DNA from: Euprymna scolopes
Taxonomy: Eukaryota
Assembly: GCA_053919585.1 (NCBI GenBank)
Contig: CM132791.1
Length of the DNA: 64,000 nt
Strand: one strand, 5' to 3'
Shown here: positions 90 to 42,271 of the stretch, piece after piece
How the letters are laid out: each line of letters begins with the position of its first letter
Position numbering within the stretch: position 1 is the stretch's first letter
Notes under the pieces: generated by a model
Seen by the model: the letters and a program-made list of their open reading frames with translations, nothing else
The model's database searches: none
What the model was told of the DNA's origin: nothing
Translations under genes and position numbers: made by a program

Positions 90-255
90 CAAATGATTAA
101 TAAAACATGTTAAAAGACATCTTGAAAAAGAGTTAAAAACATATTTAATTTTAAAAAGGAAGCACAAGATAAGTGTATAGTCCTTAATCCGCGGAGTTTC
201 GAAGAAATACCCTCCTTCTCATCAGAAGGCAGGAATTAGCAAAATGCGGGATCGG
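46..255 (-). mobile_element. Penelope-like pseudo-LTR fragment (HHR family A) ending in (TA)n
   Basis: Reverse complement aligns by eye with 31227-31376, which follows a Penelope-type GIY-YIG ORF; runs into (TA)n at ~46-86. Confidence 0.75.
182..228 (-). ncRNA. Minimal type I hammerhead ribozyme (family A, copy 1)
   Basis: Minus strand: ctt CTGATGA gaagga-gggtat-ttcttc GAAAC tccgcgga TTA agg. Core, 6-bp stem II, palindromic stem III region, 3-bp stem I. Confidence 0.75.
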
Positions 256-1273
256 TGTCGCCTTCTGAAAGAAGTGGCAAAGTCTGTTAAGCCTGTGATA
301 AAGCCCCCATTAAAGACATCACATACAAAACCGATTTATATAAGCAGGGGACAACATGAAAACGGACTTTTAGAAAGGTTTGTTCACGGATGAAGGACGT
401 ATCACTCTTGATGGCCCAGATGGCTTGAGCAAGGGATGGGTCCTAGATGGATAACATCGTCATCAGCGTTTAAGGTGCTAACAAGGTGGTGGTGGGATAA
501 TGATTTGGACTGGATTATCGGAGGTACTTTAGTTGGCCCATGGAAAGTTCCAGAAGGCGTTAAAATGACGGAAAATGCTTACATAGCTTTTCTGCAGGTG
601 CACTTTGGACCATGGCTGGAGAAGCAAAGGTTGACGTTCAGAAGAACCAATATTTTGATGCAGAATAATGCTCCTTTGTATGCAGCAAACAAAAGCAAAG
701 AGTAATGCAACAACTGGGGTTCTCTGGGCTACGGAAGAAGGAGTGGCCTGTGAATTGAACCGAATTGAGATTCTTTTGGAGTATCATGAAACGACGCCTC
801 TATGCAAGTGGACGCCAATTTAAGAGCAAAGATGAGTTGTGGGATAATCTCCAAGAAGTATTGCGAGGAATAACTGTTGACGAAATCACAAATTTGACTA
901 ATTCTGTGGACCAACGTCTTTTACAAGTAATTCATAAAAAAGGATTGCATATCCTCTACTAATTATTTCACGTAGAAATTGTTATGTAGTTCTTGTGTTC
1001 TAAGCATTTTTCCTAGTTCATTTAATGTTGGAAAATTATTTCAATAAACAAGTTATGTGTATATTGTGTTTTTTTCTCAAACTCGTTAATACCGTGACCC
1101 ACTGAAATCAACAGATATCCCTGTTTTCTGCCATAGTTTCGCTAATACTGCTTTAAATACTTTTATTTTCTGACTGGAGTAACTGAATAGTATTGCAAGC
1201 ACTTTCTCAAAGTTTCATGGATTTTTATTCACTAAATATTTAAAAAAATGTAAACTCGTTTTAATTTGACACG

Positions 1274-1928: not shown

Positions 1929-2799
1929 AAACAAAAATATTTTGTTATTATTATAGCAGAGTGCGTATGATAAATATCAGCACTAACCGAAATATAGGTG
2001 GCTAACTAAGGTATTATCATCATTAGCAGCGTTTGAGCACATATGCAAAGTAGCAAGTGTGTAAGGGCTTGCATCAGAAGAAAAGAAATAAATGACAGCA
2101 TGTGGTCGGAAAGAAACAAATTGCGCGGCGGTAAAGATGGACGTGTAAAGTTGAAGACGATAAATGGCTGACTATGGTCGAATAGGTGGACCTGTGACTT
2201 CGTTGTGGCAGCGAGGGACTTTTAAGCTGGTGTTGAGATGGCGGGGTTTTTATAATCTCATGGCAGACGAAATGAACAGTAAAAAAAATAAGAAGCAAGG
2301 AATGTTTGAAACGTGACAGTAATAAATGCCTTTTGCTAAAACAGAAAAAAAGTCGGATTTATTTTTGTTTCTTTCTTTCCCTGCGACGTTACATTATGAC
2401 ACACCTAAAATGTTTATGAGGTCAGCGTAGGATTACAACCTCCGCATTAAAATAAAATATTTCGATATTTTATTTTATTAAGTTATCACTTCTTATCCCC
2501 CTCGTGGTTTAATGTAAGTGAGTGTCAGGTTGCACTGATTATCGGGAGTGGTAGAATTTGGATAGTGTTTGATTATTTAAGAAGACGGCTTTACAATAAT
2601 TTGTTTACATTAGACTTCAAAACGACCATGTTAAAGTTCGTTGTGAATAATTCGATTGTACTAAATGAATAAATACGAGAACAAATTTAATTTTTAATAA
2701 AACAAACGTCGAATTGACTATATTTATTTATTGACAATGGAAAGGTTTAGAAGTGTGTGATTCAATCGGCTTGCAAAGAATACGCTACAATGTCTGATC

Positions 2800-14715: not shown

Positions 14716-15337
14716 GTCGTCGTGTGTGTAAATGTATATAAATGTAATTATCACCGGTTATATGTGTCTCCAATATGTACCCGCTCCGTAACATAAATAC
14801 AGCGAAAATCGAATCCAAATATATGCTTGTAAATAGGCACGCACGCGCAAGCAAGGGTAAACACGCGCACACAAATACGAAATGTACATTGATAAATTCA
14901 AATATAAACTAAGTAATTGAAAATGTAAATATACACAGTATGCATATATTTCTTTTCCATTAATACTAGTAGAAATAAAATGAAAAATAATATATACTGT
15001 ACACACGACCGCTCTGTGGAACACTAGCAGGCACAAACTGTTACGGAATTAGATTTGCACGACTGCGTAAACAAACTAACAAGGAAAAAATANNNNNNNN
15101 NNNNNNNNNNNNNNNNNNNNNNNNNNNNNNNNNNNNNNNNNNNNNNNNNNNNNNNNNNNNNNNNNNNNNNNNNNNNNNNNNNNNNNNNNNNNNNNNNNNN
15201 NNNNNNNNNNNNNNNNNNNNNNNNNNNNNNNNNNNNNNNNNNNNTCCAACGAGGGAAAAATGAATATTTAAAAGAGTGTAGCCATCAACAATTGTGGGGG
15301 TTTCAGCCTTTTATCATGTTTTTATTTTAAAATATTT

Positions 15338-15378
15338 TTATAACGTGTTTCAAGCTTTGGTTCGCTTTCTTCAGATAT
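15338..15378 (-). ncRNA. Minimal hammerhead-like motif (family E, left arm)
   Basis: tat CTGAAGA aagc-gaaccaaa-gctt GAAA cacg TT ata. Perfect 4-bp stem II; very short stems I and III. Confidence 0.55.
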
Positions 15379-16104
15379 TTTTGTGAAAAGGTTTTTTTTT
15401 TAAATGTGAGGTTGAAATGTTATTTTTACATCTGCTGATACTAAATGTGTTTTTCAGAGTGATGTGGTCTCAGACATTCTGTCTCCAATAGTAAGTGTTG
15501 GTAGTGTCCGGTCAGAGTTAATTTCAAAGAGGGTGCTTTTGGTCCATTTGGTGAAGGTTTTTATGTCTTTTTTATGACTTTCTTTCCCCATGTATAGCAC
15601 ACATTCACACACAATCACACACACATATACATACATGTACATACACACATGCACACGCATACGTACGGAGGCATATACACATACACACGCACATACATAG
15701 AAATATATGTAGGAGCATACATATATACATACCCACCTACACACTCACACACGTACTCACACACATCCACCAACTAATATATCACACACAAATTGGTTAT
15801 TTTTATTTATTTATTTTTTTCCAATCAAAACGCGGATGCATACATGTACTTAATCATTCAAACATAAATACACGCACACACACAAGTAAGATGGGGAATA
15901 GGTAGGAGAACATATATATACACACACACACCGCACACACACATATACATGCACATACACATATATATACATACATGTATGCACATACACACTCACATAC
16001 ATCCGCATACTATGCAGACATACACACATACATACACGAACATGCAGATGTAAAAATAACATTTCAAACTCCCATTTAATAAAAAAAAAAACCTTTTCAC
16101 GAAA

Positions 16105-16145
16105 ATATCTGAAGAAAGCGAACCAAAGTTTGAAACGCGTTATTA
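16105..16145 (+). ncRNA. Minimal hammerhead-like motif (family E, right arm)
   Basis: CTGAAGA aagc-gaaccaaa-gttt GAAA cgcg TTA; palindromic CGCG at stem III. Confidence 0.5.
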
Positions 16146-16212
16146 AAATATTTTAAAATAAAAATATGATAAAAGGCTAAAAAACCCACAATTGTTGATG
16201 GCTACACTCTTT

Positions 16213-16215
<3 letters not shown>

Positions 16216-16277
<62 letters not shown>
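16216..16277. repeat. (TA)n microsatellite between two HHR elements
   Basis: Direct inspection. Confidence 0.95.
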
Positions 16278-16280
<3 letters not shown>

Positions 16281-16328
16281 CACTGACAGACAGCATTGCA
16301 ACCAGCAAAAACCACAAAAGCCAACAAA

Positions 16329-16387
16329 CCGGAAGTCCAAGACTCAAGTTTCGCTCTCATTTGGGCTCATCAGTCAGACACATCCGA
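16329..16387 (-). ncRNA. Type I hammerhead ribozyme (family C)
   Basis: Minus: cggatgt-gtctga CTGATGA gccc-aaatga-gagc GAAAC ttga GTC ttggac-ttccg. Stem I gtctga/ttggac (two G-U) extended by cgga/tccg; predicted cut between 16341 and 16340. Confidence 0.82.
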
Positions 16388-16456
16388 ACTTAGGATTCGA
16401 CACGCGAGCCTCTTGCATGCGAGGCAAGCACTCTACCAACTGAGGAAACGCGCCGC
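16388..16456 (-). pseudogene. tRNA-Ala(CGC)-derived Pol III head (SINE-like), immediately 5' of the hammerhead
   Basis: CTCAGTTGGTAGAG (D arm/A box), perfect anticodon arm CTTGC-CT-CGC-AT-GCAAG, GTGTCGAATCC (B box-like); acceptor stem broken. Confidence 0.8.
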
Positions 16457-16764
16457 ACACAAGAAATAGATCAAAGAAACCGCAAGATAAGCATCCATTG
16501 CTCAATCACATATCGTTTTGCTTTTGTAAATTTTTAATAATAAACAAATAAATTGTAAAAAAATAAAAGTACTTGTTTTTACAATTTATTTATTATTAAA
16601 TTTTAAGAAAAATAAAACAATATATGCTTATTTTCTTTAAAGCAAAATTGAAAATAATTTCTCGTTATAAGGGGGGAAAAATTGTACAATTCCGTAATTT
16701 CTCTTTGCAATTTCATACAACGGAGATACTTCCGCTCGTATTTTCCAATTTATTCCGATAGCAA

Positions 16765-27476: not shown

Positions 27477-27740
27477 ACACACACACACACACGCACACAC
27501 ACATATATATATCTCGCTAGATTCAGCCACTCTGATGAGTCGTAGACGGCGAAACACGTGTCAGTTGATAATTTTGGTTTAAAAATAATATATATGCCGT
27601 TCCCCATTTAAGGGGGTACCAAATTGGTCAAATAGAAAATTATTCCCAACTCGCATTTAGGTAAAAAATACAATATCGTATAAATAATTGAATACATTCA
27701 AAAAGTACCGCTAACAAAAACAAATAAAAACATCTATATA
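27477..27740 (+). mobile_element. Short HHR-bearing element (family B, copy 1) flanked by the direct repeat TATATTCTCACCACAT
   Basis: Repeat at 27461-27476 and 27741-27756; the ~200-bp body is homologous to 42073-42271. Confidence 0.8.
27527..27567 (+). ncRNA. Minimal type I hammerhead ribozyme (family B)
   Basis: ccact CTGATGA gtcg-taga-cggc GAAAC acgt GTC agttg; palindromic ACACGTGT at stem III; predicted cut after 27562. Confidence 0.85.
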
Positions 27741-28380: not shown

Positions 28381-29498
28381 AGANNNNNNNNNNNNNNNNN
28401 NNNNNNNNNNNNNNNNNNNNNNNNNNNNNNNNNNNNNNNNNNNNNNNNNNNNNNNNNNNNNNNNNNNNNNNNNNNNNNNNNNNNNNNNNNNNNNNNNNNN
28501 NNNNNNNNNNNNNNNNNNNNNNNNNNNNNNNNNNNNGTTTTCGAGGGCATTCATCGTCAAGCCTAAATATCAGTTGACGCGATACAGACAAAATTTAATG
28601 AACGACATCATCATTATTATTTTTTATTTTTATTTTTTATTTTTTTGCGAATTAGTCCACCAGGAAAATTATCTATGGTAATATATTCAATAGGAAATTG
28701 ATTCTAAAAGAATACATACGCAATCTGCATAAATGAAAATATGAACTTACGACTGGCAATACCATGTGTCTAATAATGTGTTGGTAATAATGTAAACATC
28801 TGAGATAAAGTTAAGAACAAAGATTATTCGAAGAAAATACTTAGTAATATCTGCAAATAAGCGAGAAGTTAAGATTTTAATAAAAAATTTAAGCTTCAAA
28901 AAATTAAAATTTAAGTTAAACTATACCTAATGTAACAAGGTTTTAAAACCCTTAAAATAAACTGACGCGCTCCACTCATAATTTGAGATATCCATATGTA
29001 TATAATGTAAGCAAACAATTTAAATAGGTTATATTACATGAACCATGAACAATCTATAATATGATATAAAATTATACAAAGGTATTGCATTTTTGACTTA
29101 AAACTCGAAACAACTTAACTCTATATATCCTGTTCTGCTAATTTTCCTGTTTTTAAAACTTTTTTGTCAATTATGCCTGGTACCACCCTAAACCAGTACT
29201 TAAATAACATTCTCCAATCAAAAAAACATAAGCCGACTTCACAATTCCCATTAACGGAACATAATTATAAGGTGAAGCCCGAAGGTTTTACCTCGAGGTA
29301 TCTAAAGCAAAGAAAAAAGAAAGAACAACAAAAAAGATAAATAGAAGCATTAACTCCCCCACTTCTATAACCCCCCACCATACCCTTTAAGTACTAGGAA
29401 CAAACCTGGTAGCTTTCTTCTTTTCGAGATGACCTCAGAAGACAGGGTCGATGACTTCAGAGCTAAGTTAAACAATTCTTATCCATAACTGTTAATAA

Positions 29499-29644
29499 TG
29501 CCTACACTTTTGCACTATATATATATATAAAATGAAATATGAACTATTTTCGTCTTCAAGTTATTCTTCTTCCCATCCTCCATCTGATATAGTTACTAAT
29601 CCAATACAGCACTGGAGCAGCCCTTCCATCTACAATCATACAAC

Positions 29645-29676
<32 letters not shown>

Positions 29677-30209
29677 TTAATGAGAATAATAATATTTCTC
29701 CTAACAGCCATCCTAACACCAAAAACACTCATTATCCCCTCCAAAATAGTCCTCATACAGACATTGTCCCACCATTTGTTGAACACTATGAACAAAATTC
29801 AAACTATTTAACTAATACAAATCAGCAAATTAATATTAATACCAGACCTCGAGCTTTTAATAAAGTACATGCATATATCGGCGCTACTTCAACATTAATT
29901 AAGAAAAGAATATCAAACCACATTTCTTCTTTTAACAACCATAATTCTAATAATAATCAAGGAACTTCTCTAACCATTTTAATTTAAAAACTTAACTCTA
30001 ACAATACTCCCTTCTCAATCAAATGGAATATTATAAAAAAAGCTAAGTCTTATACTTCAGGCTCTAAATCATGTCGCCTCTGCATAACCGAAGCTATAAC
30101 TATAATTACTTCCCCTCAAAGTAACAATATAATAAATTCTAAAAATGAACTGATCTCTTTCTGTAAACATAAGTCCAAATTTAATTATGGCAAGTTTGAA
30201 ATTACATAG
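29499..30209 (+). pseudogene. Penelope-type GIY-YIG endonuclease with one in-frame stop at 29985
   Basis: One frame reads CL..CTIYIYK-[~110 aa N/S/P/H-rich]-AYIGAT..KKRISNHISSF..SLTILI*KL..IKWNII..CRLCITE..INSKNELISFCKH, the PLE endonuclease pattern. Confidence 0.8.
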
Positions 30210-31253
30210 TTATTACTTTTACCCTTTATATAGATAAAAAGATTTTTCTTTAACTTTATCGTTTTTCGACATACTTCTTAATAATTTATAATTTAATAAT
30301 CCTTTATTTTAATTCTTTATCTCTTTGCATGTCCGGTTTTTATCTGCATTTTTGTTTTATTCTTTAAACTTTCCTATCTATCTAATATATCAATCTACCC
30401 ACACTTTCATTTTACTATATGCATTTACTTACTTTTTTTTCTTGAATTTGCAGATACCGGCCATCCTCTCCCCTTATATAAATTTTATTTTTTATTTTTA
30501 TTCTTATCTTATTTTATTTTATATTTTATATTTTATTTTTTTATTATATTATATTTTATTTATTAATTTATTTATTCTTTATTTTCTATATATTTATTAC
30601 TAATTTATTTATTTATTTTTTATTTTCCTTTTAGTGTCGTTTAACAACTCTTGCTGACATTTTTTTAAGTGATGACTTGTACATTTCAGTTGACCTATAT
30701 TATTTTGCCCTATATATTTTTCGCGCCTTTAACATTTCCTGTCTGGGTCATTTTGACTTTTGTTTCCCTTTATTTTATATTTTATATTTAACTTTATCAT
30801 TATTTTTTAATTTATTTTCTCTTCTTTCTCTTCCCAGATCTTTCTTATTTATATTTATGTCTCAGAAGTAGAGTGAAAATCTCATCTTATTTTTCTTTTA
30901 TTAATATTATTGGAATCTTTTCTGTTTTCCTTGTACACATTTTTGTGAATTATTCCATGGATTTCTGCCTTTGGATTATTGTGGACCATCTTCTTCTATT
31001 TACGGGATCTCCTTGGATTTTACGTGTACAAATGGAAATTCTTTTAACTTTTTTGAAGTTGTACATTTGTATTTTACCGTCACTGGATTTTTTTATTTTC
31101 CACCAGACTATCCATTCGTGTGTAATCACCTTTTCTTTACCATATTCCCTCTGCTTCACTTTTTTTGTTTTCAAGTAAGATCTTTGACTTACTTGTTGTT
31201 TCATCAAATACTTCTGCATGCAAAATCCGATCCCGCATTTTGCTAATTCCTAC

Positions 31254-31300
31254 CCTCTGATGAGAAGGAAAGTATTTCTTCGAAACTCCGCGGATTAAGG
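31254..31300 (+). ncRNA. Minimal type I hammerhead ribozyme (family A, copy 2)
   Basis: cct CTGATGA gaagga-aagtat-ttcttc GAAAC tccgcgga TTA agg. Confidence 0.78.
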
Positions 31301-31959
31301 ACTATCCATTTATCTAGTGTTACCTTTTCAGATTAAATATGTTTTTAACTCATTTCAAAGTGTTTTTTAACATATTNNNNNNNNNNNNNNNNNNNNNNNN
31401 NNNNNNNNNNNNNNNNNNNNNNNNNNNNNNNNNNNNNNNNNNNNNNNNNNNNNNNNNNNNNNNNNNNNNNNNNNNNNNNNNNNNNNNNNNNNNNNNNNNN
31501 NNNNNNNNNNNNNNNNNNNNNNNNNNNNNNNNNNNNNNNNNNNNNNNNNNNAAACTCGAAACAACTTAACTCTACTAATCCTGTTCTGCTAATGTTCTCG
31601 TTTTTAAATCTATTTTGTCAATTATGACTGGTACCACCCTAAACCAGTACTTAAATAACATTCTCCAATGCAAAAAACATAAGCTCCCTTCACAATTCCC
31701 ATTAACGGAAGGTTCTACCTCGAGGTATCTAAAGCAAAGAAAAAAAAAACTTCCACGGATTAATATGGGAGAGGGGAAACTATCTTCAAGTACTATCCTA
31801 AACTGAGAATGGGGTAAAGGACTTATACTAAGTAGATATTAATAAGTCCTTCTTACTTTTTTTTTTAATGGAGAGTAGATAATACAGTGGATGTGTCATC
31901 GGCAGCTCCAGTAACTCGCGCTTCTCCTTTTTTGTCCCCCAGTCCTCATTTCCAATGAG

Positions 31960-42075: not shown

Positions 42076-42271
42076 AAATTCAGCCACTCTGATGAGTCGT
42101 AGACGACGAAACACGCGTCAGAGGATAATTCTATTTTAAAAATAATATATAGGTCGCTCCTCATTTAGGGGTACCAAATTAGTCAAAGGGAAAATTATTC
42201 CCAACTTGCATTGAGATGAAAATGCTATTAGTATAAATAATTGAATTCATTTAAAAAATATCGCTAACAAA
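42073..42271 (+). mobile_element. HHR family B element, copy 2 (hammerhead at 42084-42124)
   Basis: ccact CTGATGA gtcg-taga-cgac GAAAC acgc GTC agagg; body aligns with 27516-27720. Confidence 0.85.

Follow-up and report, generated by a model that had tools for sequence, protein, structure and literature searches.

A tRNA-like module joined to a type I hammerhead ribozyme in a probable retrozyme family of Euprymna scolopes

Results and Discussion

Features of the locus

The window analysed here is a stretch of 64,000 nucleotides from the genome of Euprymna scolopes (contig CM132791.1, assembly GCA_053919585.1). On its minus strand, a tRNA-like module of the Ala(CGC) type lies next to a type I hammerhead ribozyme (HHR), and both belong to one short copy of a dispersed repeat family, called the tRNA-HHR family below. 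Read from 16486 to 16216, the order on this strand is leader, tRNA-like module, 3 nt, hammerhead, tail and (TA)31 (Table 1). The copy spans positions ~245 to 495 of the reference copy L020:1212-1709, the start of its homology having been located by alignment with 33 other copies, and 16 nt are deleted within it, upstream of the tRNA-like part. It is a worn, dead, 5′-truncated monomer and an inert relic.

Table 1 Features of the tRNA-HHR family copy and its 3′ junction in the window.
Feature	Coordinates	Strand	Basis or remark
Family copy, 5′-truncated, single orientation	16278..16486	minus	87% identity to natural copy L020 by BLAST
Leader, remnant of the unit body directly upstream of the tRNA-like module	16454..16486	minus	aligns to conserved upstream sequence of family copies
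tRNA-Ala(CGC)-like module, 71 nt	16383..16453	minus	Rfam tRNA, 20.3 bits in this copy
Type I HHR with extended stem I	16331..16385	minus	Rfam RF00163 match at 16335-16379
Predicted self-cleavage site GUC/UUGG	16340..16341	minus	C17 position in the Rfam alignment
63-nt 3′ tail piece of the unit, including private T4 and T5 runs	16278..16340	minus	family alignment
(TA)31 microsatellite at the 3′ junction	16216..16277	unstranded	adjoins the tail

A preliminary description of this stretch, made from the sequence alone, had proposed a type I hammerhead with an extended stem I and a GUC site at 16341/16340. The Rfam model Hammerhead_1 (RF00163) agrees with it, giving a full-model match with 36.4 bits (cut-off 34). 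A single occurrence of the core string CTGATGAG-N12-CGAAAC was found in the 64 kb, against 0.03 expected. The ribozyme has CUGAUGA, GAAA and GUC, i.e. the conserved core and a cleavable NUH triplet; cleavage is predicted after GUC from the Rfam alignment, and stem I can be extended to the limits given in Table 1. Other copies of the family score 38-46 bits, and the array subfamily described below reaches 53.1 bits. All three helices can form in the family HHR. Stem I consists of 6 bp plus 3 bp. Stem II is a clean GCCC/GGGC helix in the majority of copies, with one C.A mismatch in the window copy and a compensatory pair difference in the array subfamily. Stem III has 2 bp closed by the palindromic loop UCGA (UUGA in the window copy), and, judged from its sequence, such a helix has the design of hammerheads that act as dimers.

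In the tRNA-like module, the D arm contains a near-canonical A box, and the 5-bp anticodon stem is perfectly paired; the loop is CUCGCAU and the anticodon CGC (Ala). In the window copy the T arm and B box are damaged and the acceptor stem is not usable. Four better-preserved copies match the Rfam tRNA model over its full length (1-71) with 30.8-33.4 bits (cut-off 29), so that the tRNA-derived module with A-box-like and B-box-like motifs, also proposed in the preliminary description, stands. ARAGORN, applied to the window and to 29 loci, called no tRNA; the module is therefore tRNA-like and not a tRNA gene. The acceptor stem is weak in the family (5/7 pairs) and worse still in the array subfamily. 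This weakness, and the lack of conservation of the stem between subfamilies, make full tRNA mimicry unlikely.

A high-copy family with a repeating unit of 409-410 nt

The genome has a size of 5.9 Gb and 925 contigs, no fewer than 46 of which are of chromosome size. Searches of it for the two halves of the unit gave at least 3,422 and at least 3,085 first-look candidates. Natural copies (L020:1212-1709 and L091:633-1042) rather than a consensus served as references. Forty scored copies, located on many contigs, were 88-91% identical, and the scored copies of both searches together 88-93%. Across 34 aligned copies, the tRNA-like part was linked to the HHR and the tail wherever a copy extended far enough; the same linkage was found in the second (array) subfamily. 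The juxtaposition is therefore not due to chance; a chance juxtaposition was what the preliminary description had named as refuting its reading when it proposed a genome-wide BLAST for copy number and linkage.

The repeating unit measures 409 nt from cleavage site to cleavage site with L020 as the ruler, and 409-410 nt overall. It consists of the tail piece, a body of ~210 nt, the tRNA-like module, the type I HHR and the cleavage site. The homology among copies extends ~210 nt upstream of the tRNA-like module and then into the tail and HHR of the preceding unit, over more than 300 nt in all, and copies picked for the 5′ half often continue upstream through a complete second HHR and tRNA-like part. 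The module is internal to the unit; it is not the 5′ head of the element, as had been supposed. One array, at L091, comprises 8.3 units of 410 nt with 99% identity between units, a 53-bit HHR in every unit and flanking (TA)n at either end. Searching the genome with the Rfam model revealed further arrays at a spacing of 409-412 nt.

Among 30 copies unselected for their 5′ extent, the 5′ ends lay scattered between positions 1 and 294 of the reference. There was no clear excess of 5′ ends at the cleavage site, where only a few copies begin exactly. These data bear on a classical tRNA-derived short interspersed element (SINE), which would be transcribed by RNA polymerase III (Pol III) from the tRNA head to the T runs, trimmed by the HHR and copied head-first. 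Such an element would account for the A-box-like and B-box-like motifs, for the scores of good copies above the tRNA cut-off and for the 2-3 of 30 copies that begin 9-15 nt upstream of G1 of the tRNA-like part, and it has a precedent in Sm-alpha of Schistosoma, a SINE-like element derived from tRNA-Gln with an HHR. However, most copies that reach the tRNA part continue upstream of it as family sequence, some by more than one unit, and no excess of 5′ ends was seen at the tRNA start. Tandem arrays and head-to-head pairs (see below) are not SINE-like, and cleavage of a head-first RNA by the HHR would part the promoter from the tail. The T4 and T5 runs at ~16308-16325, which the preliminary description had taken for possible Pol III terminators, are missing at this place from the majority of the family and are private mutations of the window copy. 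We therefore consider a classical SINE improbable.

Insertion architecture points to Penelope-like elements

We examined 62 family insertions in the sampled loci. Of these, 32 were head-to-head (-)(+) pairs abutting within a few nt, and no tail-to-tail pair was found among the 62. A (TA)n tract of at least 8 nt was present at one or both ends of 57 insertions, versus a background of 2-13%. In the single-orientation insertions, the tract was on the 3′ side in ~20 of 26 and on both sides in five of 26. Target-site duplications are unreadable in such microsatellite targets. The (TA)n behaves as a priming or target microsatellite rather than as an encoded tail. The family is a dispersed, high-copy, non-coding retroelement with a fixed 3′ end at (TA)n; this end joins (TA)n directly, and no partner tail of a long interspersed element (LINE) was found among the sampled loci.

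Strong 5′ truncation, partial tandems, an adjacent inverted 5′-truncated copy and a bias for microsatellites are hallmarks of Penelope-like elements (PLEs) (PMC8557442). The graded 5′ truncation, tandems, inverted partners and (TA)n junctions of the tRNA-HHR family match this published pattern. An insertion architecture of Penelope type rather than LINE type is supported by these observations, in line with the non-autonomous, probably Penelope-mobilised retroelement of the preliminary description. PLEs are also extremely abundant in this genome, with 14,709 GIY-YIG candidates, open reading frames (ORFs) of up to 870 aa and frequent inverted pairs. At G000:C12:14496712-14504984 and in many other places, near-identical GIY-YIG matches with frames of 800-870 aa form inverted or tandem pairs a few kb apart, pointing to a very young and very abundant PLE family. 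The 3′ region of this young family (L075:700-1413, minus) contains long runs of A and terminates in TA/TACA repeats.

The same architecture bears on a satellite-type tandem repeat that would spread as DNA through unequal crossing-over or extrachromosomal circles, with the tRNA-like and HHR parts as passengers. Arrays with 99% identity between units are what such a repeat would produce. However, thousands of short copies are dispersed on all the large contigs. They share a fixed 3′ end, are truncated to graded extents on the 5′ side, adjoin (TA)n and form head-to-head pairs, all of which points to target-primed reverse transcription. The selective conservation of the tRNA-like and HHR core described next is also at odds with passenger sequences, and we regard a satellite origin as very improbable indeed.

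Conservation of the tRNA-like module and its possible function

The array subfamily is ~80% identical to the main family overall, and this identity is unevenly distributed. Between the two subfamilies, 68 of the 71 positions of the module and 46 of the 48 of the hammerhead are identical, versus 75-81% for the tail, body and leader. Taken together, the tRNA-like and HHR core is identical at 114 of 119 positions (96%) versus 235 of 306 (~77%) elsewhere (Fisher’s exact test: P = 8.8e-7). The acceptor strand and the anticodon loop account for the three differences in the module, the anticodon changing from CGC to UGC by a CpG transition, and both Pol III boxes are unchanged. As judged from this comparison, the core appears to be selectively conserved, and the module as strongly as the ribozyme. 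In addition, the sense strand of both monomers has no run of four or more T, although T makes up 32-35% of the bases (P ~0.08 and 0.02), so that Pol III could read through tandem units. These features are consistent with the module acting as a Pol III promoter through its internal A and B boxes, a function to which we would give not quite an even chance.

The module may also serve the RNA itself. A contiguous complementarity of 14 bp links its variable-loop/T-arm region with the 3′ strand of the HHR (P ~5e-5). The resulting helix would cover GAAA, stem III and the cleavage site; it is present in the predicted minimum-energy folds and dominates them. According to these models, the helix probably keeps the ribozyme inactive in the mature monomer. 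The 410-nt monomer is predicted to have a long, partly rod-like fold that is stabler than that of shuffled sequence (z = -3.7). The 14-bp pairing joins tRNA-like positions 44-57 to the HHR 3′ strand, e.g. L003:1556-1569 with L003:1614-1627. The HHR 3′ strand also resembles the 3′ half of the T arm at nine of 13 positions and can for this reason replace it in pairing with the T-arm 5′ half. This resemblance may hint at the origin of the fusion.

An alternative explanation is a retrozyme-type element that is transcribed by read-through and in which the tRNA-like module is only an RNA structure, such as a switch, a handle for ligase, processing or export, or a recognition site for reverse transcriptase (RT). 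This explanation is favoured by the 14-bp helix and by the conservation of the anticodon stem, a part that is dispensable for a promoter. It also fits the RNA reads, which represent both strands and lie within host transcripts, and the view in the literature that retrozymes lack promoters. On the other hand, the weak acceptor stem, not conserved between subfamilies, speaks against full tRNA mimicry; both Pol III boxes are among the unchanged conserved parts; and a sense strand free of T4 runs suits Pol III. We see a purely structural role as a serious possibility, though not the one we would choose. The structural and promoter roles of the module are not mutually exclusive.

Family copies in RNA data

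The RNA data consisted of raw reads from poly(A) libraries and of assembler contigs. In these data, the tRNA-like and HHR core was covered ~100-fold deeper than the body, a signal suggesting that more than one family has this tRNA-HHR design. Between 82 and 91% of the reads run on into unrelated sequence, with both strands covered, and the core therefore sits in many contexts. Read joints that go back by about 405 were considered as evidence of circles and rejected, since they are expected from terminal redundancy. Reads of runs X23 and X24 aligned to L091:1043-1116 reveal one highly expressed locus with a 74-nt copy that starts exactly at the HHR cleavage site. This copy lies between (TA)n-G-T9 on its 5′ side and (TA)n on its 3′ side, and ~1,000 reads carry four private variants.

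A model for transcription, processing and insertion

We interpret the family as a PLE-dependent retrozyme with a built-in tRNA-type module, and the window copy as its 5′-truncated monomer, at a probability of roughly 0.75. In this model, tandem or multimeric copies would first be transcribed, for which Pol III acting through the A and B boxes of the module is the foremost candidate at slightly less than even odds; the T4-free sense strand would permit read-through into the next unit. Hammerheads, probably dimerising through the palindromic stem III, would then cut at GUC/UUGG and release unit-length RNA, which a tRNA ligase of the RtcB type could circularise. A PLE GIY-YIG endonuclease/RT would cut (TA)n, and the (TA)n 3′-OH would prime on the U/A-rich end of the RNA. 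Two (TA)n 3′ ends would remain after such a cut in the palindromic tract, both able to prime, which may explain the head-to-head pairs. Priming at one end would yield 5′-truncated monomers, priming at both ends head-to-head pairs, and running round a circle or along a multimer tandem arrays.

Several observations weigh against this interpretation or parts of it. The 30 sampled GIY-YIG loci and the PLE of the window showed no BLAST similarity to the family and no Rfam HHR, in a sample that is small and comes mostly from one young PLE family. In the 30 unselected copies, the 5′ ends are not concentrated where Pol III would be expected to start but 40-58 nt upstream of G1 of the tRNA-like part (nine of 30; P = 1e-4). 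This cluster corresponds to positions 245-264 of L020:1212-1709 (L020:1456-1475) and includes the window copy and several head-to-head junctions; it could mark the base of the predicted rod helix, where the RT would stop, or else another type of template end. The B box of the module carries one extra T. The conservation of the core could have resulted from exchange of modules between subfamilies and not from purifying selection, and the argument from the T4-free strand is weak, the two monomers not being independent. The RNA reads represent both strands and mostly stem from copies that lie inside host transcripts, and the poly(A) data showed no pile-up of ends at the cleavage site, no strand bias and no circle-specific joints, such libraries being uninformative on cleavage.

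Comparison with known elements

The family is an element of the retrozyme/Sm-alpha type with a conserved tRNA-type module, and as such a new variation on known elements. By analogy, Sm-alpha of Schistosoma is its closest precedent. Like Sm-alpha and Sj-alpha, the squid family is short, non-coding and present in high copy number, combines a tRNA-derived part with a type I HHR and occurs both dispersed and in tandem. Its HHR closely matches the Rfam type I consensus (53 bits in the array subfamily), which is built largely on the schistosome ribozyme. The two differ in host (flatworm versus mollusc), in the tRNA-like part (tRNA-Gln-TTG versus an Ala-type anticodon) and in length (335 bp versus 409-410 nt), and the comparison is with the published descriptions of the schistosome elements. 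Sm-alpha has been described as a SINE-like element derived from tRNA-Gln-TTG that contains a type I HHR (PMC2770079).

Metazoan non-LTR retrozymes (lacking long terminal repeats, LTRs; PMC7229834; PMC7761336; preprint 10.64898/2026.07.22.740005) share with the squid family a non-coding unit that is a few hundred nt long and contains a type I HHR, the occurrence of tandem copies and monomers, a structured monomer and a proposed mobilisation by PLEs. Retrozymes are reported to lack promoters and to rely on read-through transcription (PMC7761336). In the squid family, however, the HHR is fused to a tRNA-like module, whereas these descriptions of retrozymes mention no tRNA-like part, and the published mussel and coral constructs do not contain the B-box string of the family.

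PLEs with hammerheads near their 3′ ends or in pseudo-LTRs (PMC4209133; PMC8557442) resemble the family in their strong 5′ truncation, partial tandems, inverted 5′-truncated partner and (TA)n bias, and also in having the HHR, with its short palindromic helix III, at ~80-90 nt from the 3′ end. Unlike these elements, the squid family has no RT/endonuclease ORF and no sequence in common with the sampled PLE copies, and tRNA-like modules have not been reported in PLEs. The cephalopod Ceph-SINEs (Akasaki et al. 2010; Kojima 2018, PMC5786205) likewise contain tRNA-related sequence in a short non-autonomous element. They are head-first, have CORE/RTE-derived bodies and depend on RTE LINEs (PMC5786205), and they have no ribozyme, in contrast to the internal tRNA module, HHR and PLE-type insertions of the squid family. 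A relationship with Ceph-SINEs was rejected from their published description. Our literature search found no publication pairing retrozymes with cephalopods, and one giant-squid genome paper merely counts 235 hammerhead matches.

A tRNA-type module joined to a ribozyme and equally conserved offers a testable answer to the question of how retrozyme RNAs are made. If the module is a Pol III promoter, the family would be the first class of retrozymes with a promoter of its own, and Sm-alpha and retrozymes would be one kind of element. The family links the schistosome Sm-alpha ‘SINE’ to retrozymes and to Penelope-type mobilisation. A wider proposal, of a superfamily of self-sufficient ‘Pol III retrozymes’ in cephalopod-type genomes that combine a tRNA-derived promoter, terminator-free transcription, excision by the HHR and a T-arm/ribozyme off-switch, is tentative. 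The predicted switch between T arm and ribozyme would represent a simple natural design for controlling a self-cleaving RNA. Mollusc genomes of decapod size are reported to hold almost no SINEs (PMC13218726), and the family adds a large unannotated class of repeats to such genomes.

Other repeats in the window and in the sampled loci

The window also contains two copies of another repeat, family E, at 15264-15435 (-) and 16044-16219 (+), with a 172-bp unit of fixed ends. At least 1,645 candidates with 93-97% identity were found in the genome. The two copies in the window are 94% complementary and, as an inverted pair, enclose ~608 nt of CA/TA-rich repeats; pairs of this kind also exist elsewhere in the genome. 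Family E looks like a foldback element of the miniature inverted-repeat transposable element (MITE) type with a terminal inverted unit. The tRNA-HHR copy had been described as lying tail-to-tail with family E on a shared (TA)n: the outer end of E does touch the same (TA)n, but E is a foldback-type inverted unit and not the partner of a retroelement tail. A hammerhead-like core in family E was considered and rejected from its structure as a fixed-end 172-bp unit in inverted pairs.

Further hammerhead-like cores are present in the window. Those at 27532-27555 (+) and 42089-42112 (+) have a different core, with a stem II of GUCG..CGGC or CGAC and the palindrome ACACGYGU in stem III; they have no upstream tRNA-like part and no similarity to the tRNA-HHR family. 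Two others, at 31257-31286 (+) and 196-225 (-), have a long stem II and a CCGCGG palindrome, and a similar core was found at L016:469. The core at 31257-31286 is located near the 3′ end of an RT-less Penelope-like unit (29100-31745). Finally, a family copy at L017 is flanked by two inverted 5S rRNA-like matches, at 995-1109 (+) and 2050-2162 (-), with 43.1 and 37.8 bits (cut-off 38), which are possibly a 5S-derived repeat.
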